Shown here: positions 34,260 to 63,374 of the stretch, piece after piece
How the letters are laid out: each line of letters starts with the position of its first letter
How positions within the stretch are numbered: the stretch's first letter is position 1
Source of the DNA: Leidyana gryllorum EB-2025a
Lineage: Eukaryota > Protista > Apicomplexa
Assembly: GCA_048772705.1 (NCBI GenBank)
Contig: JBLWGC010000092.1
Span: 62,001 to 126,000, forward strand
Direction of reading: 5' to 3'
DNA length: 64,000 nucleotides
Program-made: the position numbers and the translations under genes
The notes under the pieces: generated by a model
Databases searched by the model: none
Told to the model about the DNA's origin: nothing
What the model saw: the letters and a program-made list of their open reading frames with translations, nothing else

Positions 34260-35071
34260 CCAAACGGTTTGATCCGTTTAATTAATTATTTACATTTGTG
34301 ATATTTGAGCAAATCACAAACAGACGCACGCACGAACGAACGAACGAACGAATAGACACACAATTAGACCAATAAAGACTGTCGGACGATACGTCCTCCA
34401 CAAAGTTGTCGCAAAGACAATTGCGGCTGGCCACTGCACCATCTAGTAAAAGGCGAGACGGTGATAAGCTATGGCCAACCGGTCTGTTTGCACAAAGAAA
34501 TCAATGCTTTTGCAATTAAAAGACACAACAAATGGGGTTTACCAAAGACGAGACGTCTCCCGCGACCCGACCGTAATTTAGGAAACTCAGAACTGGTCGA
34601 CGAGGCCCCAGGAGACCCCAGGAAACGCCACGTTAATGATCCGAGGGGTGGAGCCACATTTTGTGGAAAGTGGACGAGGACGCGGGGACGCAGCGGTGTC
34701 CGTTCAGCTGCGCGAAACCCGAGGAGACGCGCCGCTCTCTGCAAAAGGTGGACGAGATTCGACTCGACACTGACAAATTGACTGACACAGAGTAACTGGC
34801 GGTGTCAATCAGCTCCAATGCCTCGCGACCTTTGATCGAGACGCGCGCTATTAGAGGGCTAAAGGTGAGATTTCGGTTTGGGAGTTTCCACCACCTTATT
34901 TGTGGCAGTCGATGGCTATTGGGTGAATCTAAGACTGCGATACTTTTCCGTAACTCTTTCTTCGGGTCCTATTTTATGTCATTCCAATGAGTGGATGAAT
35001 CGTATAAAAAGTGGCAAGTTTGGGCAAAATTCCTTTTGTGAATCCATTCTTATTAACTTTCAGTATCTGCG

Positions 35072-42205: not shown

Positions 42206-42517
42206 GAGAGATAATTCATCCCCAGCAAACGATAGCTAACATTGAGCAGCGACAAGTACAATATGTGACGACCATTGTGCCAACAAAGGCCTTCACCCAA
42301 TCTGAAGAGTCTATGCTGACGAGTTTCAAAAACAATTTGTACTCCACAAGTACAGATCACCCTCTTTGAGAACTGTGAAGCGAACCGAAGCGAACCAAAC
42401 CGCTCAAACCTACAGGCAGCGACCAACAACAAGCTTTGCAAGAGAAGAACATATGAGACAAATTAGTGTTGATCAGAAAGACTTCTGATAAATCAAAGAA
42501 AGCAAAACTGTCATCCT

Positions 42518-43834
42518 TTACTTCTTGCCCTTGGTAGTGTACTCCTTCTTCTCAACCTTCTTGATAACACCCACAGCAACGGTGTTTCTCATGTCACGGA
42601 CGGCGAAACGACCAAGAGGGGGGTAATCAGAGAAGGCCTCAACGCACATGGGCTTGGTGGGCTCGAGCTGGACGATAGCGGCATCGCCGTTCTTGACCAT
42701 GGTGGGGGCCTCGTCCATGACCTTGTTGGTACGCTTGTCCATCTTGCTCACAAGCTTGGCGAACTTGCAGGCAATGTGGGCAGTGTGGCAATCCAAGACA
42801 GGGGTGTAGCCGGCCTTGATCTCACCAGGGTGGTTGAGGATGATGACCTGAGCGTTGAAGCTCTGGGCGGGCTTGGCGGGGTCGTTCTTGTTGTCAGAGG
42901 CGACGTTGCCACGCTTGATGTCCTTGACGGAGACGTTCTTGACGTTGAAACCAACGTTGTCACCGGGGATGGCCTGGTCGATCTGCTCGTGGTGCATCTC
43001 AACGGATTTGACATCAGTGACAACACCGTTGGGGGCGAAGCAGACGGTCATGTTGGGCTTCAAGACGCCGGTCTCGACACGGCCAACAGGGACAGTTCCG
43101 ATACCGCCGATCTTGTAGACATCCTGGAGAGGAAGACGGAGGGGCTTGTCATCCGGGCGCTTGGGGACCTCCATCTTGTCCAAAGCCTCGACAAGAGTCA
43201 AACCTTTGTACCAGGGCATGTTGGAGGACTTCTCAAGCATGTTATCACCAACGAAACCGGAAATGGCAACGAAGGGAACGTTATCGGGCTTGTATCCGAC
43301 CTTCTTGAGGTAGCCAGCGACTTCTTTCTGGATCTCATCGAAACGCTCTTGCTTGTAACCGCAGGCATCCATCTTGTTGATACCAACGATCATTTGCTTC
43401 ACACCAAGAGTGAAGGCGAGCAAAGCGTGCTCACGAGTCTGACCTTCCTTGGAGAAGGCACCCTCGAAACCACCAACATCAGCAGGGACAACGAGAAGAG
43501 CAACATCAGCCTGAGAGGTACCAGTAATCATGTTCTTGATGAAATCACGATGTCCAGGGGCATCGATGACGGTGTACTCGAATCTGGGAGTCTCGAACTT
43601 CCAGAGGGCGATATCGATGGTGATACCACGTTCACGCTCGGCCTTGAGCTTGTCAAGAACCCAAGCGTACTTGAAGGAACCCTTGCCCATGTCATTGGCC
43701 TCCTTCTCGAACTTCTCGATGGTACGAGCATCAATGCCACCGAGCTTGTAGATCAGATGACCAGTTGTAGTAGACTTGCCAGAATCGACGTGGCCGATGA
43801 CAACAAGGTTGATGTGCTGCTTCTCCTTGCCCAT
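42518..43834 (-). CDS. EF1A: Elongation factor 1-alpha copy A (438 aa, intronless)
   Basis: [21 protein letters not shown]; ends EYTTKGKK. Confidence 0.98.
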
Positions 43835-44016
43835 TGCGTTGAAGTGGTGGAAGTGAAAGAAGTGTAAGAAGAAAGGTAAGAAGGCAGAAAACCGCTGATC
43901 GTATTGATCAGAAACTGGATTAGAAAGCTTCTGGGACTTCGCACACACGTCTCCGCACACATTATGACTTGGGCAGCAGTACGGTTACTGTTGCCTATCT
44001 TACGACTATATGGCGT

Positions 44017-44478: not shown

Positions 44479-44619
44479 GGTGATTAAAAAGGAGTTGAGG
44501 GGCTAAACGGCCGTTTCCGTTTTGTCCAGGGGTATCGGCTCCAAGAAATTCCCTTAATTTTTTGCAGCCTTCGAGGAGCTTTTCTTAAAGACTGAGCTTG
44601 ATTACTTACTGTTCTCAAA

Positions 44620-45936
44620 ATGGGCAAGGAGAAGCAGCACATCAACCTTGTTGTCATCGGCCACGTCGATTCCGGCAAGTCCACCACCACCGGTCACCTT
44701 ATCTACAAGCTCGGTGGCATTGATGCTCGTACCATCGAGAAGTTCGAGAAGGAGGCCAATGACATGGGCAAGGGTTCCTTCAAGTACGCTTGGGTTCTTG
44801 ACAAGCTCAAGGCCGAGCGTGAGCGTGGTATCACCATCGATATCGCCCTCTGGAAGTTCGAGACTCCCAGATTCGAGTACACCGTCATTGATGCCCCCGG
44901 CCATCGTGATTTCATCAAGAACATGATTACCGGTACTTCCCAGGCTGACGTTGCCCTCCTCGTCGTCCCCGCCGATGTTGGTGGTTTCGAGGGTGCCTTC
45001 TCCAAGGAAGGTCAGACTCGTGAGCACGCTTTGCTCGCCTTCACCCTCGGTGTGAAGCAAATGATCGTTGGTATCAACAAGATGGATGCCTGCGGTTACA
45101 AGCAAGAGCGTTTCGATGAGATCCAGAAGGAAGTCGCTGGCTACCTCAAGAAGGTCGGATACAAGCCCGATAACGTTCCCTTCGTTGCCATCTCCGGTTT
45201 CGTTGGTGACAACATGCTTGAGAAGTCCTCCAACATGCCCTGGTACAAGGGCTTCACCCTTGTCGAGGCTTTGGACAAGATGGAGGTCCCCAAGCGCCCT
45301 GATGACAAGCCCCTCCGTCTTCCTCTCCAGGATGTCTACAAGATCGGCGGTATCGGAACTGTCCCTGTTGGCCGTGTCGAGACCGGCGTCTTGAAGCCCA
45401 ACATGACCGTCTGCTTCGCCCCCAACGGTGTTGTCACTGATGTCAAATCCGTTGAGATGCACCACGAGCAGATCGACCAGGCCATCCCCGGTGACAACGT
45501 TGGTTTCAACGTCAAGAACGTCTCCGTCAAGGACATCAAGCGTGGCAACGTCGCCTCTGACAACAAGAACGACCCCGCCAAGCCCGCCCAGAGCTTCAAC
45601 GCTCAGGTCATCATCCTCAACCACCCTGGTGAGATCAAGGCCGGCTACACCCCTGTCTTGGATTGCCACACTGCCCACATTGCCTGCAAGTTCGCCAAGC
45701 TTGTGAGCAAGATGGACAAGCGTACCAACAAGGTCATGGACGAGGCCCCCACCATGGTCAAGAACGGCGATGCCGCTATCGTCCAGCTCGAGCCCACCAA
45801 GCCCATGTGTGTTGAGGCCTTCTCTGACTACCCCCCTCTTGGTCGTTTCGCCGTCCGTGACATGAGAAACACCGTTGCTGTGGGTGTTATCAAGAAGGTT
45901 GAGAAGAAGGAGTACAACGTCAAGGGCAAGAAGTAA
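44620..45936 (+). CDS. EF1A: Elongation factor 1-alpha copy B (438 aa, intronless)
   Basis: Near-identical to copy A; ends EYNVKGKK. Confidence 0.98.
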
Positions 45937-46121
45937 ACAGCTCAGTCGACAATAGTAGCTTAGCGCTGTTTCTTTGTTGACTATCGACATTTCACCTGTA
46001 AAGGCTGCCTCGATGGAAAACGAAATCCACTAACCTAAGTACTACAATCCTATCCCTCGCCAATAATGGAACAGTTCGTTGCACATTGTGCAGAGCAAAC
46101 TTCTGACTAGAGTAATGTAGA

Positions 46122-46551
46122 ATGGCTACTCATTGCCCCTTCCTAAAGTTCTGTCAACAATGCCAGCACGATGAGTGGGTAGTGGGAGATGACTGTATGT
46201 GGTGTTTTGACCCGCTCACTAATTCAGGCGCTTGCCTGTCAAGACGACTACATGTATGCGATGGAGTCGAAATCGAGTCGTACAGCGAGTGTACTGATGC
46301 TGGCTACCCACTATGGGGGATAACACTCGTGTGCTGCAGTGGTTAGTCAATATTGTTCGTGTACACACCGTCGCTCCATTGTCTAAACAGGTCTGGTCAT
46401 TGTGCTGGTGATGCACATCGGTCTGTGGCTCCTCTCTTCTTTCGCACGTCACGTGTTGAAACAGAAACGGAAACCCTCACCGCCCAAGCAACGACATTCC
46501 ACCAAGGAGCCGTCGGGGTCAGACACGGCGACTTCCTCACCACTGTACTGA
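46122..46551 (+). CDS. Small Cys-rich (PSI-like) single-pass membrane protein
   Basis: C...CQQC...CMWC...GAC...C...C, then hydrophobic LWGITLVCCS|GLVIVLVMHIGLWLL via intron 46342-46390, then a basic tail. Confidence 0.45.
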
Positions 46552-46667
46552 CCAGCTCACTCGTACGTGGATCAGCTCCCAAGGGGTGTATATGTGGAGC
46601 TATCTTCGTCACCCAACTTCGTTTTGTCGTCGAAACACCCACTCCGCAAGTCCTTGACCTGGCTGCA

Positions 46668-47682
46668 TCAACCATCCATCATATTATCGTCATCCATTTG
46701 GCCTTCGCTTCCGACGTTGGGAGGCAGCGTGTAGACCGGTCCTCCAGTCCGCCGTGCTGCAGCTCTTGTGAGCAGCTCTTTAGTATTCTGAGATGTTATC
46801 CTCAGCGCTTCTTGCGGGTTGGTGAAGCCTAACATCTGAAGAAGGGCCGTCAAGTCAGTGGGCGCTCTCATTGCCAGTGGAGTTGTCGCTCCCGTGCTCA
46901 GAATCAGCCTGGACGGCGGGAGGTATCTGGTGATGTACGGAAGATTCTTGAACAAGTTTTTACAGCTCCGAGGATCCTGGAGTGCTCGATCCAAACACAC
47001 TTCAATGTAGATATTTTGGCTGTACGTACGCACATTCAGTGGCACTGGAACGGTAAATCTTTGCTTACCGAGCAGCCAGCCCCAATTGAGCTCGTCTTAC
47101 AGTGAAGGGCATTCTGGCATCGTACAAATCCAGCGAGACCATATCAACCATTCCCTGCGGGCAGCAGAGTGAAGAAATCGGGATAAGTACTGATAACCCA
47201 CCTGATTCAGGGTGTGATGCCAACTCTTTTCGTCAGTGATGTCCATCGATACCACATCGTATATCCCATTGGGGCCCGTGGCTTGTGATGCTTGCGTCCG
47301 CATGAAGCTGTGTACCATAGCAGAGTCATTGGGACCTGTAACCGTGACGTGCAGCCGGCTGATCTGCAGGAGGTCAGTGGATCGCTCTGGAGGGGTTGTC
47401 AGGTTGAAGGTGGCCAAATCATGAGCCAACCGAACGTCATTCGACGCCACCCGTCTCCGAGGGCCCTGAGAAGAGTAAATTTGGACACGAGATTCTTACG
47501 GGTAGTACGCTGGTGGGTTGGGCAACTCTCTCTTGTTCTTTCTTGTGGGTTTTGAAGGTATTCGGGCTCAACTTCTCTATGAGAGTCGTGAAAGCTATTC
47601 CATGGTATCCCAATGCCCTGGCTTCTTCCAGCAGTGCAGGTGCAGTGGCTTTGTTGTAGGGTACCCGGAAGTCAATGTACAT
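46668..47682 (-). CDS. RPP30: RNase P/MRP subunit RPP30 (Rpp1), multi-exon
   Basis: MYIDF...LGYHGIAF, SRLHVTV, YDVVS, IYIEVC..AL.D, LILSTGA.TPLAMRAP.DL..LL..LGF. Confidence 0.87.
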
Positions 47683-47702
47683 CTCCTTCGAAAAAACCCA
47701 AA

Positions 47703-50700
47703 ATGGCCGCGACCTTGCGGCTGGTGAGCCGTCTTGGCCTTCCTTTGATACGGAGAGATATCTGGTTCCTCATTCTAGCACTCTACCCGCTCATAATCAC
47801 CCTCGTGAGTTGCACACACGCACTATTGGTTACAAACTGTATGGGTCCAGACGTACACCACATGGGACTTGTGGCATCCAACGGCTAATGAGATTCTCTC
47901 GGGAGTGGAGCTCTATTGCCCATTGACTCAAACCAACACTTGCCCGAATGTGCGATGGCTCTTTGACATTGTTCAACGTTTGCCTCCTGGCGTTCCTGGT
48001 GCTTACCCGAGCGACGACGTTCCGGTGGAGTTCATCGAGCCACTGCTCCAGAGTAACAATCTGGCCCTTCTTTTGTATGCTGGCTGGGGTATAATCGTCA
48101 CTCTCACGGCCTTGGCATTCTTGTTGCCCCACTGGAGCACCAAGTATGCTTGCTGGGCTTTGTATAAGAACGCACAGAGTCTCGAGACTGCAACTCACAT
48201 CTTAGTTCTTGCTCCTGGCAAGAAAGGTGTATTTTGCCCGCTTCGCACAGGCACTCGTTTCAAAGACGCCAAGGATCGATCTGAGTTGGAACAGGTGAAG
48301 CTCATAAGTTACCTGAAGAAGACCTTCCATGTGGCTTACGCCGACTCAGTGAAGAACACTGGGACTGATGCCAAGCTCACCAAGCGTCTACAAAAGTACC
48401 TAACGGTTGGGAGTGATCGAGCGTTGGCGCTCTTCCCGCTGCAGTACGACATGGACTGTCCCATCAGTTATTACCAGAAGAAGCTGGACGGCCCCGGAAT
48501 CCCCGATCAGAGAGCGGTTTCCCGGCACACCGAAGTTTTCGGGAAGAACGAGCAAGACATACCTATTCCGTCTTTCATAGAGCTGTTTGGAGAACACGCG
48601 CGTGCGCCACTCTTTGTGTTCCAGATATTCTGCTTACTTTTGTGGCTCATCGATGAGTACTGGCAGTACAGTATGATGACATTGGGGATACTGGTGATGT
48701 TCGAAGGACAGATGGTTCACAGAGTGAGTCTTCGCAGCCCACTGCTTGCTGCTTTCATCACCCACATCCCTGACAGAGGAGGAAGGATTTGGGAATGATC
48801 AAAGGGATGCATATGCCCCCCATACCCATTGCTGTTCGCCGTGGAGGTCGATGGTATGTAATGTCATCCGTGGATCTGCTCCCCGGCGATGTTTTTTCGT
48901 TGGCAATGGCCAAAGATCTCAAGACTCTGAGCCCCTATCCCGGTGGTTCCCCCATACCGACTGCTCGATTCACGGGCGAAGAGCAATCAGTGTCGAGTCC
49001 TTGTGATGCAGTTTTGCTGAGCGGATCTGCCATTGTCAACGAGGCTATGCTCACAGGCGAGAGTCTCCCTCAGATGAAAACTGCTCTGGACTTTGTTGGA
49101 GTGAGTGTCCAGTGGCCAACCCCCTTCCACACGGTGCTTCCGACTCTTCTTAGGTTTCTGAGGAAGAGTGTTTGGCTGTGCAGCTGAAACACAAAGGCAG
49201 TGTTCTGTTCGCGGGCACTTCAGTGTTGACCGAACAACAGGGCAACGACAAATCCATTGATGGAGCTATTTGCTACTGTTTGAGGACGGGCTTCCAGACT
49301 ACACAAGGAAAGCTCATCCGCACTGTACTGTACAGCTCAGAGCGCGCTACTGCAGCGTCCACCGAAGCCATGTGGTTCCTCTTAGTTCTTCTGGTAGTGG
49401 CGGTGCTCGCGTCCGGATATGTGCTCAAGGCGAGTTGGGGTTTGCCCAACCGAAACCACTTTAAGCTCCTGCTACATTGTGTGATGATCATCACCTCGGT
49501 AGTGCCGCCTGAGCTCCCGGTGACAATGTCGATGACTGTTACTCTGGCGCTGGCGGGCTTATTCAAGAAAAAGTTGTACTGCACTGAGCCCTTCCGGATT
49601 CCCTCGGCGGGCAAACTTACCATGTGCTGTTTCGATAAGACGGGGACCCTCACATCGAGTGAAGTCGTTCTGGAAGCGTTGGTGGGGCTCCCGCGTCAAG
49701 ACGCCGGTAAAGTGGATATGCTTAAGGTTGACGCCGCTCGTCTGGACGATCCGAGCCAGTTCAACGTTGACGCCTGGGAGACACACGCTTCCAGCGGGGG
49801 CACCAAAGCTGACCTGGGGGAGCTTCCCCATGCGTGTCAAGTCGTTATGGCCTGTTGTCACTCTCTGGTGGCAGTTGCCAAAAAACGCCAATTACCATTG
49901 TCAATGCGGACCAAAGGGAATATTGAGACCCAAATACTCGGTGACCCATTGGAACGCACTGCTATGGAACGTACAGAGTGGAAACCTCGTATGGGACAAA
50001 CCGGCGAGTTGATCGGCCCCAATGACTCGGTTGCGACCATACTGAAGAGATATGCGTTTGCTTCCGAGCACCAACGTATGACAGTTGTGGCCAAGTTCCC
50101 ACATCCTGAAACCGGTAAACCGGTGGTGTACGGTGAGTCTGGACACTCTTTCTGCCATGAAATGACGCGTCTGTAGTCACTTGTAAAGGAGCAGCGGAAA
50201 GGGTGGGGACACTGCTGGCTCACGTTCCGGCGTGGTATCGCGACACGGTTGAGAAACTCGCACTCAATGGTCGGCGCGTGCTCGCTATGGCGATAAAGGT
50301 GTGGGAGAAGGATGAAGCGGCCATCAAGACCGCTACGAGACAAGAATTGGAGTCGAACCTCCATTTCTGTGGCTTGTTGGTATATGGATGTCCCATCAAG
50401 CCTAAAACCAAAGAAACTCTGGCGATTCTTCGACAATCTGGCCATGGCCTCATGATGATCACTGGCGACGACCCACGCACAGCGGCATATGTACGTGGTG
50501 CGAACACCTGCTTTGCCAAATTCGTGTGCTTCTGCAGATCGCGTTGGACACCGGTTTGACTCCTTCGGAGAAAGACGTGTATTTCGTGAAAGGCATCGTC
50601 GATAGCGATGACAAAGATGTTCAGCATCTTCTCCTCGAGAGCCGGGATAAGCAAAAGACGTCCCAAATCCATGTCCACCAAATAGAGTAAGTTGACTGGA

Positions 50701-52253
50701 GCTGGCTGTCGTTGATATCTTATGACTCAGCCACGCATACAGCACGGACCCGGAGTGGTTCCACACCAAAGCACTGACTTTGACGGGCAAGGATTTGCAG
50801 CTGATGAAACCTGAGACTCAAAAGTGGTTGGTTCCACACACTTCAATCTTCGCGCGAGTGACACCGAAGGATAAGGTGAGTAGTGGGACAGCTCCAGCCA
50901 CGTTGACTGCAAATTGTCGTCAGGAATTCATTTTGCGTCTCTTGGCGGCGGAAGGAGAAACCACTTTGATGTGTGGTGACGGAACCAATGATGTGGGCGC
51001 GCTGAAAGCAGCCAACGTTGGGATTTCGTTGCTCAACTTTGACATAGAGAAGATCAAACAGAACAAAAAGAAGCAAATGGATGCCATTGCGCGTCAGGAA
51101 CGCATGACAGAGACTCTGGAAGAGAGTAGAAAGCGTCGGATGGACTTGGGTCTGACAGCAAAACAGATTGCGCAGCTGGAAAAGGTGGAAGCTAATCTGC
51201 GTCAGCAGGAGGCGGGTTTCGGATTGCTGCCTGCAGCCCTGCGGGATCGATTCGTGAGCGCTATGCGAAAGACAGTTGCGCAGAGTGAGGAGAATATGGC
51301 CCAAGCTAATCTGGCCAAGGCGGCTGGCCACCAGCCCGGGGGGGCTTCACCCCTGAAGGATATAAGTCAGGCTCTGGAGGACGAAATGCCAATGTTGAAG
51401 CCCGGTGATGCTTCGATGGCCTCTCCTTTTACGTATAGAGGGCAGACCATCAAGTGCGTGAAGCTTCTGGTGCGGTCTGGGAAGGGTACACTAGCGACAG
51501 TGATGATGATGTATAAGCTGATGGCCCTCAACTCGTTGACCACGGCATTCTCCTTGTCGGTTTTGACGCTGAACGGTGTCAAACTGGGGGACCGCCAAAC
51601 CACCATTGAGTCACTGTTCATCAGTGCCCTGTTCATGGCGGCGAGCAACGCACGGGTGAGTAGGCTGGAACAACTTGTTTTCAACTCCATATTTCAGAGT
51701 GCCAAGAAGATCACTCAGGATCGAGTGATCGATTCTCTCTTCGACCCGTACTTTTATACCAGTATAATATTGCAAAGTGTGGTGCACATCAGTACTTGTT
51801 CCATCGCTTGGTTTCTGGCCTCATTGTACGGTCCGGCTAGTGCTGAAATGGACGGTCCCTTCAAGCCCAATCTGGTGAACACTGTCATCTGGTTGCTCTC
51901 GGCTGCGCAACATGCAGCCTCATTCACCGCGAATTACGAAGGCGACCCATTCTTGATTTCAATGAAAGAAAACAAAGTTCTACACAAAGGTAAATTCAAT
52001 AGTGGGTATGTATGTATCATATGAAATGCCAATAGGCTTGATGGTATTCATCGGGGCTCTATTCTTCATCGCGATGGAATCGTTGCCGATACTAAATTCT
52101 GGTCTTCAATTGGTTCCCTTCCCCAACCCCACTTTCCGATATGCCATTGTGGCTCTGATTGGCCTCGATCTTGCTCTCTCCACTGCCGTGGGCAAATACT
52201 GCACAATGATTGGACGTCGGAGAATGACCCAAGCATTGCGAAGAGATTTGTGA
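47703..52253 (+). CDS. ATP13A1: P5A-type ATPase (ATP13A1/Spf1), multi-exon
   Basis: PLFVFQIFC..LW.IDEYWQYS, NEAMLTGES, TSVVPPELP, CCFDKTGTLT, MITGDD, MCGDGTNDVGALK, GDASMASPFT, FKPNLVNT. Confidence 0.94.
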
Positions 52254-52264
52254 CCGATATGACT

Positions 52265-55200
52265 TCACCTTCGTGACTGTCCTGCCGTTCTGTTCATTGC
52301 GAAGTATAGCCCTCCCTGCATTTGTACTAAGCCTGTCTTCTGCATAGTATAGAGAGTGGAGTTGAATTTGGTCTCATTGAACGATGGGAACTTTCGCAAC
52401 ACTGCACTATTCAATTTCGCCAGAGGTACACCGAGTGGTAAACCTCCCTGACGCTTCTCTTCCTCCAACAGAAGGGCCAACACGTATCGCTGTACCTCAT
52501 CTCCCGTCACCTTGAATTTCTCCTCATTCTCTCTCTCCAAAAGCGTCTCCGCATCTTCATCTTCGTCGTCGTCATCCACCTCTCCACCACTAATCGTCGT
52601 TAGCATCATGTCTTTGTCACCGGCACCCCCCGATGTATGCGATTGGTCTTGGGTTCCTTTGTTCTCAACGTCCTGTCTCTCACTATATGACTCTTCTCGA
52701 ACCGACGAGGTGGCCGCTGCAGACCCTCGCCCAAATTTGATCCGTACTTTGGCGTTCCATCGACCTTTGGTACCATTTCCATCGCCCATCAATCTATGGA
52801 TCAGTCCCGCGCCCTCCAAGCCGTCCAAAGCCCGAGTCATCACATCGTCTTTCACGTCCAAGTTCAGGTGCTCTGATACTGTTCGCACATCGGCAGATCC
52901 GTCTTCCTTCGAACTCAACAAACTCAGAATTTCAGCCTCACAGGCCGGCAGAGAAATCACACGACTCTGTCCTGCGGCATCCACGAGTTTCATCTGGACC
53001 AGAGTTAGAGTGGTGTCAAACACAATGTATCGATTTTCATGTGTTGCACCGTATCTCTGGGCCAATGCTTTCAATCGTCGTCCGATTTCAGTCACAGGAT
53101 CCTTTATCCATCCAGACTTCAGATGGAATCCATCTACACTCCATTCTTGTTCATCATCCACTGAAAATCCGTCACCGTTGTCGTTGTCGTTCTCCTTGCT
53201 ATTCCCATCCAACGGCCATAGTGCTTTCGTGAATGCAAACATTGTGTCCCTCGGTTCTTCGGTCGCTGTCAATGACTCTGTGACGGGCTGTCGGTCAGGG
53301 GAAACAGTATCGATCTTTTCTTCACCCTCGCCCTGGTCTCTCTCTGTGGTATTAGACTTCTGTTCCGCGTCTTCCGTGGACTCGGTGGCGGGGTATCTGC
53401 AGCCGTCGGCCAGTTCCTTCAACACCTGAATCGCCTGTTCGCATGTAGAGATCGCCCCGTCGCCCTTTGAGTTCCCTCGTGTTGTGCTCAGAGCACTTTT
53501 GTACGCCTCAAGTGAAGACAAGGCTTCTGCGACCAGCTTCAATGACGTCTTCGAATCAGCAGTTACTTCGTCTGTCGACTTGGAGATCTGCAACACTTCT
53601 TCGACCATTTCCTTCGCCACTCTGCTGGCGAAGCGTTTGGGACCTCCATGAAGTGCAAGAAAGATCTCCAAAGCCTCATCACGAGATCCCTGTTGCTGCG
53701 GCGCCTTGCGAGTGTTCTTTTTGGATTGTCTGGGCCATCGCCGTGTTTCATCCGGCCCCAGAGTCTCCTTGGACAGTCTCACTGGCCTTCGAGCTAATTT
53801 GGACAGCAGATCTTCGATCTGTTCCACCTGTAGGGTCCCTCCGTTCTCGGCCGCACCATTGGATCTGTGACTCGTCTCCGGGACACTTGGGTCACACGTA
53901 GAGATAAGGGTATCTAAGACGCTAATGTTCAAGTGATGAGCTGACCGTTGCAACGCTAGTGTCAACAGGTCATGGATTCGATCCCATTTGGGTCGTTGCT
54001 CCACCAAACACTGCTGCACTACGCTATGCTCTGCCAAACGGTTTCGCAGATCGTCGTGCAGTCGGAAGAATTCTCGAGCGCAGTTAGGAGCATTTGAAAG
54101 ATGTGCGCCGAGTGCTTTCAGACAGTGAGCGACATCTATGGGACTTGACAGCAACGGGCATAGAAAAGATGAGAGATCCAGATAGCAGGTGAAAGCTGCA
54201 CGATAGTTCAATTTCGGCAGCAATGCGGGTATCGAGCGTGCCACCATATCTTTGAGAGACTCTCGGGTTTTCGTTGCTCCCACCAAACATCTCAGTTGGA
54301 GCAGGGCAGTTGGCAAGGTTGCTGGTATTCGGATGGTCCTGGGTGCTAGATAAGAGTCCAAAATTGTTTTGGTATGGACGGCCATGTTGATGTTCAGCCA
54401 TATCTCCAACAGGACCAGAGCGTCCGGTTCGCAGTCAGAGCAGCCTTGTTGATCCAGCTTCAAGCGCGGAAGTAATCGCTGAGTGGCAGGATCTAAAATG
54501 CTGGTGACAGAATGGGATGACCGGCGGAGACATGTTTCACACATCTGACTGAATAATGGTCGAATGGCTTTCAACCAGAGCTCCAATTGAGCAAGTGGAG
54601 AAGTGAACTGCATTGCCGGATCTGTAGTATCTGTGGCGTTCTGTAATACGATATTGGCCAGAACTATGATTATCTGAAGCCGCGCACTTTGAAACGCCAA
54701 CTTGGAGTCGTGGAATGAGTGTTTTATCTCGTGCAAGCACTGCTCAAAGTCCCTTTCGAAGTCGGCAGGGGCTGAAGGCAAAGACTTGATTAGCTTTCGT
54801 GTGATGCGGCGGGGCGACGGGCGAGCGGCTACTAATTGGCACTGTTGTGGGTGTGTATGCAGCAGGATTCTGAGAATGTGGGACAATTGAGAGGCGACAT
54901 GTGTGGCAAAGTGTATGCTCTGACTGCCGATTAAGGGCTGACGGTGGTTGAATACTTGATTAAGGAGGGTCAGAATGTGTGTCCACACACATGGATCGTC
55001 GCGGTGCAACACAATTCCGCCGTGTGACAGAGCTGCTGTTCTTCGTCTAAGGCGTGCCAGGAAGGCTCGGCGGACGATACGGGTTGGTTTAGGCGACTGT
55101 TGAGAGAGAAATGTGAGAAAAGGCGAGGGGGAGCATATTGGATGTGGGGGTCGTGATTCTGGTGCTGGTTTGGCGAAGGTGTTTGGTTTTGATTTCCGGT

Positions 55201-55270
55201 GTGGTGTGATGGTAAGCGACGGCCGGGTGGTTGGTGGGGGCTGCGTATAGCGGAAGTGGGGAGAAGGCAT
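52265..55270 (-). CDS. Divergent APC2 / cullin-homology protein
   Basis: Cullin-like segment (ALWPL...RYGATHENRYIVFDTTLTLVQMKL...EAEILSLL) and an APC2-type C-terminal winged helix (QRYVLALL...PLAKL...TMQKTGLVQMQGGLY). Confidence 0.62.
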   Translation of the reverse strand: MPSPHFRYTQPPPTTRPSLTITPHRKSKPNTFAKPAPESRPPHPICSPSPFLTFLSQQSPKPTRIVRRAFLARLRRRTAALSHGGIVLHRDDPCVWTHILTLLNQVFNHRQPLIGSQSIHFATHVASQLSHILRILLHTHPQQCQLVAARPSPRRITRKLIKSLPSAPADFERDFEQCLHEIKHSFHDSKLAFQSARLQIIIVLANIVLQNATDTTDPAMQFTSPLAQLELWLKAIRPLFSQMCETCLRRSSHSVTSILDPATQRLLPRLKLDQQGCSDCEPDALVLLEIWLNINMAVHTKTILDSYLAPRTIRIPATLPTALLQLRCLVGATKTRESLKDMVARSIPALLPKLNYRAAFTCYLDLSSFLCPLLSSPIDVAHCLKALGAHLSNAPNCAREFFRLHDDLRNRLAEHSVVQQCLVEQRPKWDRIHDLLTLALQRSAHHLNISVLDTLISTCDPSVPETSHRSNGAAENGGTLQVEQIEDLLSKLARRPVRLSKETLGPDETRRWPRQSKKNTRKAPQQQGSRDEALEIFLALHGGPKRFASRVAKEMVEEVLQISKSTDEVTADSKTSLKLVAEALSSLEAYKSALSTTRGNSKGDGAISTCEQAIQVLKELADGCRYPATESTEDAEQKSNTTERDQGEGEEKIDTVSPDRQPVTESLTATEEPRDTMFAFTKALWPLDGNSKENDNDNGDGFSVDDEQEWSVDGFHLKSGWIKDPVTEIGRRLKALAQRYGATHENRYIVFDTTLTLVQMKLVDAAGQSRVISLPACEAEILSLLSSKEDGSADVRTVSEHLNLDVKDDVMTRALDGLEGAGLIHRLMGDGNGTKGRWNAKVRIKFGRGSAAATSSVREESYSERQDVENKGTQDQSHTSGGAGDKDMMLTTISGGEVDDDDEDEDAETLLERENEEKFKVTGDEVQRYVLALLLEEEKRQGGLPLGVPLAKLNSAVLRKFPSFNETKFNSTLYTMQKTGLVQMQGGLYFAMNRTAGQSRR

Positions 55271-55311
55271 ATATGGTGCAAGCGTTTGTTTTTGTTTTTG
55301 AGAGAGGATTT

Positions 55312-55689
55312 ATGGTGCTACCGCTGACATTATTGCGCGCTGCAGGCAATCAAGCGGTACTGGTGGAGTTGAAGAATGGCGAAACTTACAGTGGCACGTT
55401 AGTAAGCAATGATGGATTCATGAATCTCCACCTCAAGTCGGTGGTATGTACGGCGAAGAACGGCGACCGTTTTTGGAAGATGCCAGTATGCTATATAAGA
55501 GGAAGTTCGATCAAGCTGGTTCGATTCAGCGAAGCAGTGGTAGCTTCTGCCCGTGAAAACCCCGCGGCCTTTGCGCCTCCCCAGCAGCAAGTGCGAAAGG
55601 ATCTGGGTAGAGGACGAGGGAGTAACCGAGGTGGACGGGGTCGGGGTCGTGGAGGGCGAGGTGGTGGCGGTTTCACACCTCAAAAGTAG
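55312..55689 (+). CDS. LSM4: U6 snRNA-associated Sm-like protein LSm4
   Basis: MVLPLTLLRAA...LVELKNGETYSG.L...D.FMNLHL..V.CT...GDRFWKMP.CYIRG..IK; RGG tail. Confidence 0.95.
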   Translation: MVLPLTLLRAAGNQAVLVELKNGETYSGTLVSNDGFMNLHLKSVVCTAKNGDRFWKMPVCYIRGSSIKLVRFSEAVVASARENPAAFAPPQQQVRKDLGRGRGSNRGGRGRGRGGRGGGGFTPQK

Positions 55690-55715
55690 AAAAAAATTGT
55701 GTTATCGTTTGATGG

Positions 55716-56816
55716 ATGGTAGAGGCAACTAGTCCCGCACAGATAAGAGTAGCATGGCGTCGTCTTCAAGATGTCCCCAAGCTAAGGCTTGAGTTTGACA
55801 GTGCTGACTTCAGGAAGTGGGTGACGGTGGTAGAGTCTATCCTAACCGACTGTCATATTCCTGATGACCTGCGACTCAATCTGCTGATACCGATGATGCC
55901 AGCCGAAGCCAAACGTTTGGTTTATGAAGGCGGTTGCTTCTGCTGGAACGACGCGCATGAAGTGATACGAACACACTTGTTCAACGACCAACCTCCGCCA
56001 AACGCAGACTACTTGGAACTGCTGAATCTGCGTCAGTTGCCGGGTGAACCTCTGGTTGATTTCGCCAAGAGGATAGAACTCAAGGCTAAGCAGGCTCCCG
56101 TTGGATTCGAGTGGCCGGAAAGTGTATTGAGGAGTACCTTCACTCACGGCGTACAAGATCCCCACCTGTCAGTTCTGCTAGTGAAGGCAGAAGTATTTTT
56201 CTCTGACTTGCAAGGAGCCTTGAAGTTCGCTGAGGAGACGGAAGCATCACCCACACACGCGCGAAGGTTGAACAAACAAGATTCTACCTACTCGAAACAG
56301 GCCTCGTTCGCTACTGGCGAACATTCCTCTCTGGTTTGTAGTGGTAATGTGAAGTCGATTGACGAGGCCGCTGATCAAAATGACGGGGAGCCCGATCAGT
56401 TAGACATGGAGATCCTTAATGATATCTTAGAAATCTTACGAATCTCACGACGGACAAGGACGATAAAGGACTACCGGCGATACCTGCGGGCCAATGCGCC
56501 GGGTTTAAGTCCGGAGGAAAGGAAAATGATTTTGGACATGCCGATGGACGATTACGCAGAGGTCTTTTTTGTGGTGGAGATGATTCCCTGGTTCTTTCCG
56601 TGGGGTACCATGCGCTTCGGGCGACCGCTCTTCACGTATACAGCCCACGTGCCGAGACTTGGGCGCCTGTTCGCCCACCTGAATGACGGAAAGCCGGTAT
56701 TCACCCCAGGACTCTGGATCGCACGTTTGAAAGAATTGTTCGTTTCGTCCGAAGCGTTCAGTTTGTCAAATTCGGCGACAGATGAGAAGCCCAAGGTGGC
56801 CTCTAAAGTTTGTTGA
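55716..56816 (+). CDS. Solo Ty3/gypsy-like Gag capsid-domain protein with unknown C-terminal domain
   Basis: DFRKWV..VE..L....IPDD.R..LL...M...AK...WND.......F; major-homology-like LRQLPGEPLVDFAKRIELKAKQA; FTHGV.DPHL...L......LQGALKFAEETE; no CCHC knuckle, protease, RT, integrase or LTR visible. Confidence 0.78.
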   Translation: MVEATSPAQIRVAWRRLQDVPKLRLEFDSADFRKWVTVVESILTDCHIPDDLRLNLLIPMMPAEAKRLVYEGGCFCWNDAHEVIRTHLFNDQPPPNADYLELLNLRQLPGEPLVDFAKRIELKAKQAPVGFEWPESVLRSTFTHGVQDPHLSVLLVKAEVFFSDLQGALKFAEETEASPTHARRLNKQDSTYSKQASFATGEHSSLVCSGNVKSIDEAADQNDGEPDQLDMEILNDILEILRISRRTRTIKDYRRYLRANAPGLSPEERKMILDMPMDDYAEVFFVVEMIPWFFPWGTMRFGRPLFTYTAHVPRLGRLFAHLNDGKPVFTPGLWIARLKELFVSSEAFSLSNSATDEKPKVASKVC

Positions 56817-56865: not shown

Positions 56866-59864
56866 ATGTGGCTGAATATTGCCTGTGTATCTGTGTTTGG
56901 TATTCTGTATACCCATGCGATATCTATCTCCGGACGTCTATCGAAGAAATCTAACTATCATCTGGAACGAGCTTTCATCTGTCGATGCTTTTGCGCCCTG
57001 CAACGGTATTCGGTTAATGGTTCTATAGCTTCATACATTCCTGACTCTCTCATATATGCATTTGATCCTCAACCCATACACGCGCCGTCAAATGAAGCGC
57101 TCGCTCAGCAATTAATGACCAACAAGGCTCTGGCGGGCCTGGGAGTTTACTTTCGGTCTTCTAACAAACAAAAGGAGATTGTAGAGTTGCTCTCTGGTAC
57201 CGTCGTTGAGCGCCCTCCTGACCTTACTCCCTCGGAAAAACTTCAGCTTGGAAGTGACATCCTCCAACATGGCAGTCCTGAAGCTTACGAATCATTTTTT
57301 CTTCACCAACTCCCTTCTACAATGCGGCTTAGTGCTGACCGTGCACTGTCCGCGACTCCCCTTTCTCTGCAATCTTTACTGGGTGACCCCCATATCAAAG
57401 TGTTCCGTGTCCCTCCCGGCGTCGATGCTAACATTGCAGGACGTATCGAATGCGTAGAGCAGTGCCGTGACAAAGTACTCTCCGTACCGACACCAGTTAC
57501 TAAACTCATCCCTCACACCGGTTTTGCTTTACTGAAACGACCTAAGGATCCGCCTTCTCGAGGCTTCATTGACGGAGAGAACCCGGCATATGGCCGTGCA
57601 CGTATTGCTCTGCCGGGGAAGACCATTCCTCAAGCCCATAGACCTTTCTTCGCCCGGATGATGGACCGCTGGCTCGGGCTCTACTCTCTGGCAGCGCGGT
57701 TTGACCCTTACCGTGGTGCCCCCCAGTACACTACCGCTGCCGACCAGAAAGTGGCTACGGCGCTTGGTATCCACGAGAGTCGCATATGTCCCGATCTTGT
57801 CAACGAATTCAAGGAGACTGCCGTTTTTGAAACTAATTGGAAAGAATTAGGCCAGAAGCATAAGATCTTCAAAGATACCGACCAGTTCCTCCATCCAGAC
57901 GAAGTCGATCCTCCTTCTCTCAACTTGCCCCCTTCTTTTACTTCATTCCTCCAACTTGGACAATATGGACAGATGATGGCTCCAGCTCGCGCCCCGACTA
58001 CTGCCGACATTGTCGCTGGATACGAGCCCGCAGTGCCCAGCAATCCAAACGCACGGTCTCTCGTGCCCCCGGAACGGCTGAAGCTGGCTCTCGGCAAAGC
58101 AGATATGGGCCCGCCGGCCATACCACGTGACAGTGAGTGCTCAAACTGACGTCCCTCATCAGCTTTTATACTCATTTGCTTCGCAGAGAACGCCATCATT
58201 CCTGTGGTAGTGCGCGACGCGACCTTCCCCGAGGTCGCTCAATCAATTCGAGAGAAAATAGAAGAACGGACCCCCCTGGCTTCGTGGCCCACTGGATCTT
58301 CCCAACTCTTGTTGGAGCAAGTGTCCCCTGTCTACAGAGTGAGTCGATCTCTGAATTCTTCGTGATCGACAATTTCCAATTTCAGTTCCGGGGCAGTGCC
58401 GCTATCGACCGTGATAACAATCCCATAATAGGCCCCATCTTCAGTGGGATGCAAGGACCGAAGAATGACAGCTTTCTTCATTTCTACATCTCTCCTCAAG
58501 AGGGGCTCGCCATTCGATCTTCCCAACGGCGCCTGATGGCCCTCAGCTGGGTGACAGACACCATCAATGGTCTGTATGCGAGACTGCAAGCGGCCGCTGA
58601 CGCCACACCGCCGACAGTCTACGTTAATCCCGAGGGTCAGATCATTCAAACAGACTTCTCCAAGCCAGACCCCATCAGTCTCATAAAGGAGATGACTTTT
58701 GAGTATCACGGAGCAATGTTCGCCGCCTGTGGAACCTTCAAGGATCAACGAACGCATTTGATGAATGCCCGTTCAGTGCTGGTGAGCAACACTTGCTTGA
58801 TCCTTCCGACACACACCCTTTGCGTTAGGTATTCGCAGTACACCCCGTTGTGACAGAGTTGCTGTTCCAAGATGGCACTCGTCATCAGAGTGCAATGCTC
58901 GGCGCCGCTGAGATTGTCGCTATGATGGATAAAGACATCCTCACCACGCTGGTCCAAGGTAGCCTAGATACCACCGTTATAGAACTGCGAGATGCTTACC
59001 TTTTTAGATGCTCACCCCCTCTTGAGGGACGAACTGCGGAAAGCAAACGGCGAGTTCGCCAATACGCTCTACGATCAGATAGAAGCGAAACTGCGGGGCG
59101 ACAATGTGGAACTCATAGACCGCAATACCTGCCCCCTAGACAGAGCTAACGACAGAATCAGTCTATACAGCCCCGTTGCAGAAGGCCCCTGGCAGGTTTA
59201 CACCTTCTCGGGAGAAGCTGAAACACAGCAATTAGACTATGAACCCGTGATATTCAACCATGACACTCGCCGGGCCGCCGCTTTGATGGCCAAGTGCTAT
59301 GGCAGAGCGCTTCCCGGTTCCCAGTTTGCTGAAGCCCTCACTGGCGATCCTCGACTACCCCCATTCCTTCGTCAGATGGAATCCAACAGACTGTCGAAAA
59401 TGCGTATCTGTCTCGACATTCCACCTTTGGGACGCCACCGGTTCCAGGAAGCCCCCATGGCTGTTCCCCTCCAACCCACTCCTCCGACGGCACCTGTGGC
59501 TGCTGGCGTAGACCGTTCAGCGACACAAAACTCCCAACAGCAGCAGCCTCAACAACAACAACCAATGAATCTGGATCTATTGGCAGGTCCTGAAATGAGC
59601 GGTCAATGGACGTACAACAAAAGGAGCAGCGAGAGCAAAAGTGCTGGCGCGAGTGCGAAATCAAGTGATGGGCAGTCCGAAAGCGTTTTCCGGTCATCCG
59701 CAGAACTGTCTGGGTCTGGGGGCAGCTCAGCTGATTTCACTTCGTACGAAAGCGGCCATCGTCACTTCCGTCGAGGCAGAGGGTCGTCGAGTGGTGCTTC
59801 AGGCGGCAGCTACGGAGAAGCCATTGTAGCCCCAGTTGCAGCCCCAGCACCGGCATCTCCCTAA
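56866..59864 (+). CDS. Large putative secreted hypothetical protein, multi-exon
   Basis: Hydrophobic N-terminus MWLNIACVSVFGILYTHA; GT-AG introns near 58133 and 58781 link the consecutive + strand coding segments; Ser/Gly/Gln-rich tail. Confidence 0.62.
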
Positions 59865-61299: not shown

Positions 61300-63374
61300 A
61301 TGAACAAACAACCTGACGATGTTGCAGTCACACCCTGCAGTGGGGAAGGCATCACATTCGACTCCAAAGCTTTGGAGAATTTGCTGAAACGTCGTTTCTT
61401 CACGGCCCCGTCCTTTGAGATATATGGGTCCACTGCCGGTCTGTTTGACTTTGGCCCTCCAGGATGCGCTATGAAGAATGAAATCGAGAGTGCCTGGAGA
61501 CGCCACTTTGTCTTGGAGGATGACTTGATGGAAATCGCAGGTAAGGGCACGTTTTGAGCCCGCGCTCATCATGTGGCGCACGCGTGTGCGCCTCTTTGTG
61601 TTACAGGTCCCAATCTTACCCCACACGCTGTGTTGAAGGCTTCTGGCCATGTTGAGCGATTCCTGGATCTGATGGTTGAGGACGTGGTGACCAAAGATTG
61701 TTATCGGTGTGACAAGATCATTGAAGAGTGGCTGGACCGTGTCTATCTGCAGGACCCCAAGCAGGCGAACCGCAAGGAAGAGGTCGAGCAATGCTTGGCT
61801 ACTCTTGAAGGCGCTACTGCGGGCGAGATGGACGAGATTATCAAGAAGTACGGGATCAAGAGTCCTCTTAATCACGATTTGTGCTACCCGTATCCGTTCA
61901 ATCTGATGTTTGGAACTAAAATTGGTCCGAAGCCGGGGAACGATGAGTCGGGTATCGCTTACCTGCGACCAGAGACGGCTCAGGGAATTTTTGTCAACTT
62001 CCGTCGTCTCCTGGAGCAGAACGGGCGGCAAATGCCGTTCGGTGCGGCGTGTGTGGGCACATCATTCCGTAATGAGATTGCCCCAAGGAATGGTCTGTTG
62101 CGTGTGAGAGAATTCCCGATGGCCGAGATTGAGTATTTCTGCGATCCAACCAAGAAGGCAAAGTTTCCCAAGTATGAAAGTATCAAGGACGTGCGGGCGC
62201 CCTTTTATCCGAGGGATCGTCAGATGAAGAACTTGGGTCCAGTTTTCATGACTGTAGGGGAGGCAGTGGATAGCGGAGTGATCGATAATGAGACTTTGGC
62301 TTACTTTATCGGGCGAGCATACTTATTCCTGACTGCCATCGGTATCAATCCGAGCGGTTTGCGATTCCGTCAGCACCTCGACACGGAGATGGCTCACTAC
62401 GCATCGGATTGTTGGGACGCTGAGATATTGACGAGTTACAAGTGGGTTGAGTGCGTGGGTATAGCAGATAGATCCGCCTACGACCTGACTCAACACACAC
62501 GAGCGACGAAAGTGGACCTGCAAGCCCCGCGACCCTTGGCAGAGCCGAGGATCGAAGATCGTTTGGTGGCGAAGCCGAATCGGAAGGCTATGGGTCCAAC
62601 TTTCAAGAAAGATTTGCAGGAAGTATTGAATATCATCGACACGTTGTCAATGGAGGAAATGCAGAAAGCGGAGGCAGAGGTAAGTAACTACATTCTTCTC
62701 TGAATTGGCAAATGATTGCTGGATTTCAGCTCGCCGCTGAGGGCAAGTGTGTTTTGGGCAAGGACGAGAGACAATTCGTATTGACCAAAGATCTCCTTGC
62801 ATTTGAATGGATCAAAGTCAAAGGTGCGTTTCGTCACCTTTTGGCTCACTTTCATTGTGTATCTGCAGTCACTGAGGAGCTTTATACTCCGAATGTTATC
62901 GAGCCTTCGTTCGGCATTGGTCGTATAATATACGCCGTTCTTGAACACGCGTTCCGACGTCGGGGCATCGAAGATCAAGAAGATCGCAACTATCTGGCGC
63001 TTTCACCGCTGATAGCCCCCTACAAGTGTTCAATTCTTCCGATCTCAAACCAGCCACAATTCGAGCCCATTATCAGGAGTCTTCAAGAACATCTCCGGAA
63101 AAAGGATTTGAGCTGCAAACTGGACTCAAGCACAGCAAGCATCGGGAAACGATATGCCAGAACCGACGAAATCGGTATTCCTTTCGGCATCACGGTTGAT
63201 TTCCAAACTGTCGAGGATCATACAGTCACTCTGCGTGAGATTGTCAGCATGACGCAAGTGCGTCTACCGCTCGCTGATGTTCCCGAGGTTCTGAGGAAGC
63301 TGGTGCGAGTCGAAGAGACATGGGACAATGTAAAAAAGCGCTATCCAGCATTCACTCAGCAACAAGTTAACTGA
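61300..63374 (+). CDS. GARS1: Glycyl-tRNA synthetase (eukaryotic alpha2 type), multi-exon
   Basis: LKASGHVERF, FNLMF, YLRPETAQGIF, SFRNEIAPRNGLLRVREF, EMAHYA.DCWD, VIEPSFGIGRI, SIGKRYARTDEIGIPF. Confidence 0.97.

Follow-up and report, generated by a model that had tools for sequence, protein, structure and literature searches.

The window analysed here is the whole 64,000-nucleotide stretch of Leidyana gryllorum DNA. On its forward strand, positions 55716..56816 hold an intact, intronless open reading frame that runs from ATG to TGA and encodes 366 amino acids plus the stop codon. Its product is made up, in order, of a Gag-capsid-like half, a variable linker and a conserved basic C-terminal domain. 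The upstream neighbour on the same strand (55312..55689) carries an LSM domain (PF01423, Pfam E-value 5e-16) and is an LSm4-type gene, which lies outside the Gag-derived gene and serves as its synteny anchor; its start at 55312 was inferred from alignment with the LSm4 ORF of L001, the corresponding locus of a second genome. The LSm4 stop codon TAG ends at 55689, leaving a gap of 26 nt to the Gag-like ORF, and the next ATG, at 56866, follows after 49 nt, exactly as the original prediction had placed them. The genes around the ORF are housekeeping genes, as judged by Pfam searches on flanking ORFs. The CAI of the Gag-like ORF is 0.81 in frame and 0.77-0.78 out of frame or antisense, and does not tell the frames apart.

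A Ty3/gypsy capsid pattern had been predicted for residues ~25-175. We compared the window protein with 1.84 billion representatives by exhaustive phmmer, which matched its residues 9-201 to P0006 with a library-wide E-value of 8.8e-4. The family alignment of P0006 (A2, 17 members) contains zf-CCHC in 11 members, gag-asp_protease in 6, Retrotrans_gag in 5 and PNMA in 4, while RT and RNase H are found in 1 of the 17. Aligned by hhalign, the gregarine family matched P0006 with 96.5% probability and the P0006 Gag family with 97.4% (E-value 1e-11, 150 columns, columns 26-177, 25% identity), the latter being a family seeded by the match of the query itself. The gregarine profile is shallow, because the family has five members only. 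From 1,147 six-frame ORFs of the window and L001, an HMM of the Gag family picked this ORF alone (E-value 4.4e-9). With the threshold relaxed to E <= 1, the window protein still had no Pfam match, Retrotrans_gag and PNMA included, and on the ortholog P0004 Retrotrans_gag (PF03732) scored 15.7 bits, below its cut-off of 24.1; Retrotrans_gag is matched at E <= 0.01 by only 5 of the 17 members of the bridging Gag family. When the profile of the N-terminal domain was compared with PDB sequences, the best alignment joined positions 73-166 to dArc2 at a non-significant E-value of 0.064, and positions 96-137 aligned to HIV-1 CA C-terminal-domain chains in 14 of the 18 PDB matches (E-value ~1 each).

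The predicted structure points in the same direction. The AlphaFold model built on the alignment of the five orthologs (A1) has a pLDDT of ~80-90 over residues 10-184 and contains ten helices there; a single-sequence model was of no use (pLDDT 42). Together with Foldseek and hhalign, it delimits a capsid (CA)-like region at about residues 10-180 (55743..56255, forward strand), in which the ten helices are arranged in two lobes. We searched 350,542 PDB chains with the model by Foldseek: the best 50 matches were all capsids, from PNMA2, dArc1, rat Arc, HIV-1, MLV and BLV, so that the Arc and PNMA capsids proposed for comparison were both among them. PNMA2 (8rb3) was the top PDB match with a probability of 0.97, and dArc1 reached 0.99. 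The best viral structure match was a retroviral Gag (E-value 8e-4, probability 1.0). Individual PDB E-values were marginal (0.02-0.09) and TM-scores low (0.2-0.4), the latter probably owing to a differing angle between the two lobes of the model.

The lobe boundaries were read off the helix list of the model, not from structural superposition. The N-terminal lobe comprises the helices at about residues 29-88 (55800..55979, forward strand), with W35, L54, Y70, G73 and W77 invariant, and the C-terminal lobe those at about residues 97-177 (56004..56246, forward strand), with P134, E135, L138, F142 and G145 invariant. The C-terminal lobe starts with a motif, [Q/M]-x3-E-x4-[F/Y]-x2-R, which a regular expression and the alignment located at residues 107-119 (56034..56072, forward strand) and which is present in all five orthologs, E111 and R119 being invariant. 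We take this motif to resemble the consensus of the retroviral major homology region (MHR), in agreement with the weak alignments to HIV CA C-terminal-domain chains at this place.

Could the likeness to capsids have arisen by convergence or chance in an unrelated all-helical protein? The silence of Pfam, the marginal Foldseek E-values with their low TM-scores and the tendency of helical bundles to draw spurious fold matches would all fit this explanation. However, the sequence link is significant library-wide and spans the full domain, none of the best 50 PDB chains is anything other than a capsid, and an independent sequence-profile search of the PDB also raises dArc2 and HIV CA C-terminal-domain chains. 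We therefore consider an origin outside Gag very improbable. By phmmer, hhalign, the Gag-family HMM and the predicted fold, the pattern exceeds chance, and on these profile and model comparisons the N-terminal half is a Ty3/gypsy-type Gag capsid domain. Its parental gag-pol was not found in gregarines; the nearest Gag family is an animal one, whose sole named member comes from a sponge.

The other parts of a retroelement were searched for both within the protein and around the gene. A CX2CX4HX4C knuckle is absent from all five orthologs by regular expression, and zf-CCHC was unmatched in Pfam. The D[ST]G signature is likewise absent from the window protein and from the C-terminal half of every ortholog; in P0004 a single DSG occurs by chance at residue 67, within the capsid domain. 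Identical regular expressions detected both knuckle and D[ST]G in genuine Gag-Pro proteins, so that the predicted loss of the CCHC knuckle and of a DSG/DTG protease holds against a positive control. No LTR-like direct repeats were detected at the window locus or L001, no protease (HMM) or RT (phmmer) in either, and the flanking ORFs carry no domain of the pol type by Pfam, in line with the claim that the gene lies apart from LTRs and pol. The features of an autonomous LTR retrotransposon, namely LTRs with PR, RT, RNase H and IN, were not found at this gene. No second copy turned up in the 64-kb window or in 21 kb of L001, and the gene appears to be single-copy as far as these two loci show. 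The original prediction had named a missing capsid fold, or many dispersed copies with LTR or pol remnants, as evidence against itself; capsid folds were matched, and neither locus holds such copies.

Beyond the capsid half, the composition is as predicted, an acidic linker being followed by an aromatic-rich domain (12% F/W/Y). The linker (residues 181-227, 56256..56396, forward strand) has a pLDDT below 50, is 9 to 47 aa long depending on the ortholog and defies alignment; it is probably disordered. The C-terminal domain occupies residues 228-366 (56397..56813, forward strand) with a core at ~245-338, as delimited by alignments A1 and A3, and R245, D252, R255, E268, L273, P276, E288, P304, G316-R317, T330-P331-G332 and W334 are invariant in it. 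The domain, of ~130 aa, is basic in each of the five orthologs (pI 9.2-10.3), whereas the CA half is acidic in four of them; this arrangement mirrors the charge polarity of CA and NC. AlphaFold is unreliable over this domain (pLDDT below 50).

This domain had been described as unrecognised, and it has stayed so: it is conserved in the orthologs and has no relatives in PDB sequences, Pfam, metagenome contigs, the retropepsin profile or the N-terminal half. Three resemblances were considered and rejected. The segments ILETPD and IITPGKWLAK, ~57 residues apart, evoke the hhD[ST]GA and ILGxDWL motifs of retropepsins, but a decayed retropepsin was rejected because hhalign against the protease alignment (A5, like A2 made of animal retrotransposon sequences and used solely as a profile) gave a probability of 0.03%; the whole Gag-Pro alignment likewise yielded no match. 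Nor is the domain a diverged copy of the capsid half, a comparison to which hhalign assigned 0.5%. The weak matches to PmoB in the PDB (E-value ~1) and, in one member, to SH3_6 in Pfam (E-value 0.12) are chance motif matches.

We aligned the window protein with four full-length orthologs of 305-358 aa, which match it end to end. Pairwise identity among the five is 21-47%, and 28 columns, spread over both domains, are invariant. Set against a linker that cannot be aligned, these invariant columns and an ORF kept intact in five species argue for constraint on the protein sequence. The orthologs P0001-P0003 are transcriptome sequences of trophozoites, from Gregarina spp. and Protomagalhaensia wolfi, and represent three other species; the two genera represent two eugregarine families, Gregarinidae and Hirmocystidae. 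Relatives were confined to gregarines in the exhaustive phmmer search, and full-length ones were found only there, which agrees with the original prediction in placing the gene in an apicomplexan. A word-indexed search with the single protein returned no relatives, and the same search with the family alignment added P0004 only; metagenome contigs, searched with patterns of the N-terminal and of the C-terminal domain, contained none. The 6,203-aa protein P0005, considered as a longer relative or fusion, was rejected as a chance local match: the family profile gave 0.6%, and the region in question carries Kre9/KNH Ig-like repeats.

Two genomes were compared for gene order. Window positions 45000-56726 are colinear with L001 645-10903, the gene order from eEF1A to LSm4 is shared, and in each of them LSm4 is followed directly by the Gag-like gene, which answers the proposed synteny check. 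This neighbourhood has been kept across genomes of 52% and 44% GC. Such a record is hard to reconcile with a decaying, neutral retrotransposon fragment that is still open by chance. The gene is intronless and Gag-only, as such a fragment might be, and codon usage fails to set its reading frame apart from the others. Against this stand orthologs that are intact and full-length in five species, 21-47% identical, and that share conserved residues across both domains, the LSm4 synteny between genomes of unlike base composition, mRNA in three species, and the lack of LTRs, pol remnants and other copies in the window and L001. Neutral decay is thus the least credible of the explanations, with next to no likelihood.

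Taken together, profile comparisons and the predicted fold show the gene to derive from the gag of a Ty3/gypsy-type LTR retrotransposon, kept as a host gene. Gypsy-like LTR elements are present in gregarines and represent a donor pool (PMC9141347). From the distribution of the orthologs, the co-option is shown to predate the split of Gregarinidae and Hirmocystidae, and the gene has since been kept, intronless, immediately downstream of LSm4. The two CA lobes were retained together with the MHR-like motif, as alignment and model show, and the zinc-knuckle nucleocapsid, the protease, the rest of pol and the LTRs were lost. Where NC, protease and pol would be, the alignments show the basic ~130-aa domain without detectable relatives. 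The suggestion of a host-co-opted gene is therefore borne out by full-length orthologs in two eugregarine families, by trophozoite mRNA in relatives and by conserved gene order. Our preferred explanation, to which we assign a probability of roughly 0.8, is a Ty3/gypsy gag-derived host gene whose CA half likely self-associates and whose basic C-terminal domain likely binds cargo, the mechanism being the conjectural part of it. The capsid half most likely still contacts copies of itself, whether in dimers, in a lattice or in closed shells. The basic domain most likely replaces the nucleocapsid and would bind a negatively charged partner, probably RNA. The protein would then assemble around nucleic-acid cargo or scaffold it, much like the animal proteins Arc, PEG10 and PNMA2; particle formation and cargo scaffolding are inferred.

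A capsid need not be formed, though. The CA half may be a dimerisation or protein-interaction module and the basic C-terminal domain may bind DNA, RNA or another partner, which would make the protein a regulator or adaptor. The conservation of the basic domain is in keeping with such a role, and many co-opted Gag genes are not known to have capsid activity, which also speaks in its favour. A documented example is the SCAN domain of vertebrate transcription factors, a Gag CA co-opted for oligomerisation (PMC8321522). However, SCAN keeps the C-terminal lobe only, whereas both CA lobes are kept here, and comparison with PDB sequences and Pfam revealed no DNA-binding domain in the C-terminal half. 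We regard this function as possible, though rather doubtful.

Retention of both lobes and of the MHR-like motif would also suit a Gag-derived restriction factor, one that co-assembles with the capsids of gregarine Ty3/gypsy elements, or binds them, and poisons them. Gypsy-like LTR elements do exist in gregarine genomes (PMC9141347), and the loss of NC and PR fits a decoy that joins the lattice without supporting replication. Fv1 of mice and the truncated Ty1 Gag p22 of yeast are precedents, described in part in PMC8321522. Most restriction factors are fast-evolving and subject to turnover, whereas the gene described here is old, syntenic and apparently single-copy and carries a conserved extra domain; moreover, no closely related gregarine Gag was found as a target in the exhaustive phmmer search. 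Restriction is unlikely to be its function.

A co-opted capsid gene with a cargo-binding partner domain, which remains our preferred explanation, has several counterparts in other organisms. Like the gregarine gene, Arc and dArc1-2, co-opted from Ty3/gypsy Gag in tetrapods and flies, are stand-alone host genes with a two-lobed CA and neither LTRs nor pol, and the capsid domains of dArc1 and rat Arc are among the best fold matches of the gregarine protein (probability 0.89-0.99). In contrast to a shared descent, however, the gregarine gene represents an independent co-option in another eukaryotic supergroup and is no ortholog of Arc. The flanking parts differ as well: Arc has an N-terminal coiled-coil or matrix-like part and dArc1 a C-terminal zinc-finger tail, and the gregarine protein has its basic ~130-aa C-terminus. 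Capsid formation has been demonstrated for Arc and is putative for the gregarine protein.

The PNMA, PEG10 and RTL genes of mammals are, like the gregarine gene, Ty3/gypsy Gag or Gag-Pro kept by the host. The link to the PNMA family passes through the four members of the bridging Gag family that match Pfam PNMA, the window protein itself being unmatched. PEG10 has a CCHC knuckle and an active protease produced via a frameshift; the gregarine gene is without both, and its C-terminal domain is no decayed protease. Since no Pfam match to the PNMA or Arc families was obtained on the window protein or the orthologs, the predicted label 'Arc/PNMA-like' stands as an analogy at the level of the fold and fails as a statement of orthology, the co-option being independent. 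The Gag of autonomous Ty3/gypsy elements (Metaviridae), represented by the animal family P0006-P0036, has a homologous CA, and in both the CA is acidic and the C-terminal part behind it basic. Unlike these elements, the gregarine gene has no CCHC, protease, RT/RNase H, integrase or LTRs, and is syntenic and apparently single-copy.

A bolder version of the capsid explanation, which we consider quite improbable, is that eugregarines have Arc-like capsids. The CA half would form closed shells, the lineage-specific basic domain would be a new RNA-packaging module, and RNA would be carried between paired gamonts in syzygy or into host gut cells. If true, capsid-mediated RNA transfer would have been invented independently a third time, and for the first time in a unicellular eukaryote.

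Wang and Han (2021) described 14 deep gag co-option events, Crtg1-14, in animals, plants or fungi (PMC8321522). Their survey, the broadest, of 2,011 eukaryotes recorded zero gag co-option in protists and named under-sampling of protists as a caveat (PMC8321522). The operational criteria used for Crtg1-14 were derivation from Gag and occurrence in at least two taxonomic families (PMC8321522), and the gregarine gene is Gag-derived and common to two families. In the literature we found no protist for which a co-opted capsid gene of this sort had been reported before. Animals are the familiar setting of gag co-option, its discovery in plants and fungi is recent, and the gregarine gene would extend its range to Apicomplexa and Alveolata. 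The architecture is new, with a capsid domain, a variable linker and a conserved basic domain without relatives, and it offers a tractable case of a capsid protein gaining a new partner domain after loss of the nucleocapsid. For the gregarines themselves, most of whose proteins have no annotation, one lineage-specific gene acquires a plausible one. Gregarine genomes are very small, with densely packed genes, and the pressure on them to lose DNA is strong; retention of a Gag gene in them therefore implies a real cellular role.

The open reading frame (ORF) at 55716..56816 (+) runs uninterrupted from ATG to TGA and encodes 366 aa. The upstream ORF on the + strand carries an LSM domain (Pfam PF01423, E 5e-16); the TAG of this LSm4 gene ends at 55689, leaving a spacer of 26 nt, and the first ATG on the 3' side, at 56866, lies 49 nt beyond the stop. 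Pattern searches, positive on control Gag-Pro proteins, found neither a CX2CX4HX4C knuckle nor a D[ST]G in the 366-aa protein. The original prediction had thus described accurately an intact ORF, closely hemmed in and devoid of both motifs.

Single-sequence Pfam, phmmer against PDB sequences and a word-indexed protein search gave no match to the protein, and a collection of 15 billion proteins has no identical entry. Run exhaustively over 1.84 billion representatives, phmmer returned six matches, four of them full-length: P0001 from Gregarina sp. Pseudo9 (346 aa, E 5e-33), P0002 from Gregarina sp. Poly1 (324 aa, E 3e-22), P0003 from Protomagalhaensia wolfi (358 aa, E 2e-19) and P0004, encoded on the 25-kb Logan contig L001 (305 aa, E 1e-15). 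P0001-P0003 derive from mRNA of hand-picked trophozoites (PMC8051059), so the gene is transcribed at this stage in three species. Gregarina belongs to the Gregarinidae and Protomagalhaensia to the Hirmocystidae, a separate family. Since the full-length relatives come from eugregarines only, the earlier assignment of the gene to an apicomplexan is reasonable. The orthologs share 21-47% pairwise identity, and their alignment with the ORF (A1, five members only) contains 28 invariant columns in two blocks, separated by an unalignable linker of 9-47 residues. P0002 is entered twice in EukProt (P002902 and P003055), which could reflect separate transcripts or a recent duplication in Gregarina sp. 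Poly1. The remaining two phmmer matches were weak, and P0005 was rejected as a chance one.

The other, P0006, is a Gag protein matching query residues 9-201 with a library-wide E of 8.8e-4. An indexed protein search assigned it to a family of 34 proteins, 17 of which were aligned (A2); these include zf-CCHC (11 members), gag-type aspartyl protease (6), Retrotrans_gag (5) and PNMA (4) domains, with RT plus Ty3-type RNase H domains in 1/17, and for one member the annotated source is the sponge Ephydatia muelleri. With hhalign, the gregarine family matched P0006 at 96.5% probability over 166 columns and A2, a bridging family seeded by the query's own phmmer match, at 97.4% (E 1e-11, 150 columns, A1 columns 26-177). 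Searched in reverse against 1,147 six-frame ORFs, the A2 HMM matched this ORF alone, at E 4.4e-9. Pfam Retrotrans_gag stayed below threshold for the gregarine family. Searched against PDB sequences, the profile of the N-terminal half found dArc2 first (E 0.064), followed by 14 chains of the HIV-1 capsid (CA) C-terminal domain, which align to profile positions 96-137. Within this stretch all five orthologs carry the motif [Q/M]-x3-E-x4-[F/Y]-x2-R, with E111 and R119 invariant, which we take to resemble the retroviral major homology region.

Some features of P0006 were observed in passing. Its environmental contig, L002 (regions 3020-3649 (+) and 4144-5148 (+)), also encodes a separate protein of DUF1759, a Gag-associated Pfam family. 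The stored gene model of P0006 is not colinear with the translated DNA, and the gene is probably spliced; its first ~125 residues look like hydrophobic low-complexity sequence.

Residues 10-184 were modelled by AlphaFold from the five-sequence alignment as ten helices (pLDDT ~80-90). When this model was compared by Foldseek with 350,542 PDB chains, the best 50 matches were retroelement capsids only (PNMA2, dArc1, rat Arc, HIV-1, MLV and BLV), with probabilities up to 0.99 but marginal E values of 0.02-0.09 and low TM-scores. The top match among viral models was a retroviral Gag (E 8e-4, probability 1.0), and a single-lobe lentiviral fragment gave a TM of 0.54 over 104 columns. Homology of the N-terminal half to Ty3/gypsy-type Gag CA, as originally proposed, is therefore well supported by the combination of sequence matches and predicted fold.

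The second conserved block forms a C-terminal domain (residues ~228-366, core ~245-338). Its invariant positions number 14, with G-R and T-P-G-x-W among them. The domain has a basic pI of 9.2-10.3 in every one of the five orthologs, with a net charge of +3 to +14, and the capsid half is acidic in 4/5. AlphaFold was unreliable over this domain (pLDDT < 50). The domain matched nothing in PDB sequences or Pfam, in the sequence that follows CA in Gag-Pro family members, or among JGI metagenome contigs when searched alone. A retropepsin was rejected (0.03% against a dedicated retropepsin alignment), as was a repeat of the N-terminal half. The exhaustive phmmer search, run without a length filter, could detect the domain alone or fused in a protein of any length; beyond the query it found it in the four orthologs only. 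The domain that the original prediction had failed to recognise is thus a conserved one, and the gene consists of a two-lobed Gag-derived capsid domain, a variable acidic linker and a conserved basic domain.

We also considered whether the gene could be a decaying transposon fragment. Window positions 45000-56726 are colinear with L001 (44% GC), the two genomic loci compared, which share the order eEF1A, P-type ATPase, a long minus-strand gene, LSm4 and the Gag-like gene; on L001, 9846 is the last position of the LSm4 ORF and P0004 starts at 10001. Synteny goes no further than the Gag-derived gene and breaks off precisely at its 3' end. The window holds no second copy of it, and the direct repeats flanking it are chance pairs of 22-25 nt, none LTR-like. 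With the window and L001 translated in six frames, neither an HMM of the protease nor a query with RT/RNase H found a match, and no flanking ORF has a pol-type Pfam domain. Taken together, these results rule out a decaying fragment. With the trophozoite mRNA from three species, they bear out the predicted host gene, retained in synteny across eugregarine families and co-opted by the usual operational criteria. We put the probability of a Gag-derived host gene at about 0.8.

The window is gene-dense, with ~52% GC. Its sole Rfam match is a U5 spliceosomal snRNA gene at 34376-34487 (-) (RF00020; 52 bits, gathering threshold 40), and ARAGORN found no tRNA gene across the 64 kb. Housekeeping genes include a dual-specificity phosphatase, a cyclin, a P-type ATPase (47869-52024, +) and a class II aminoacyl-tRNA synthetase (61573-63374, +). 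The last two are each spread across adjacent same-strand ORFs, with only ~8 nt between the synthetase core and its anticodon-binding part, which implies very short introns or frameshifts and suggests a genome with small introns; the Gag-derived gene, unlike them, is uninterrupted. No Pfam domain (E <= 0.001) was found in 7/10 large ORFs screened, some of 723-1001 aa: the proteome is very divergent. A segment of 1,320 nt is duplicated in inverted orientation (42517-43835 against 44619-45937, 97.3% identity) and appears to give two eEF1A copies, arranged divergently or convergently; the right-hand copy is 84% identical in amino acids to the eEF1A of L001, which has one copy in the portion examined. 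Immediately 3' of the Gag-derived gene, three ORFs of 427, 238 and 290 aa (56866-59864, +; the first two overlapping by 13 nt) have no Pfam match and no L001 counterpart, and may form a single intron-containing lineage-specific gene.

How the protein acts can be proposed only tentatively. The capsid half may still self-associate, and the basic domain may fill the place of the missing nucleocapsid and bind a partner of negative charge, RNA being the likeliest; the whole protein would then assemble around, or scaffold, a nucleic-acid cargo. From the same origin, it could instead be a Gag decoy restricting the gregarines' own elements, and gregarines do carry Gypsy-like elements (PMC9141347), or a SCAN-like interaction module that forms no capsid.

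Like Arc, PNMA and PEG10, the Gag-derived host gene is a Gag kept by its host. It lies outside their orthologous groups, because it has no family-specific Pfam match and its relatives are gregarine-only, and PEG10 retains the CCHC knuckle and protease that it lacks. Among 2,011 eukaryotes, Wang and Han counted 14 gag co-option events shared between families: animals account for seven, plants for four and fungi for three. Protists, whose under-sampling they acknowledge, contribute none (PMC8321522). Full-text literature searches found no earlier description of Gag domestication in gregarines or apicomplexans. Our data support Gag co-option as an ancient and independent event in Apicomplexa, whose product has a new partner domain at its C-terminus. 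The gene is relevant to transposon domestication and apicomplexan evolution; its relevance would be much greater if the protein does assemble capsids.
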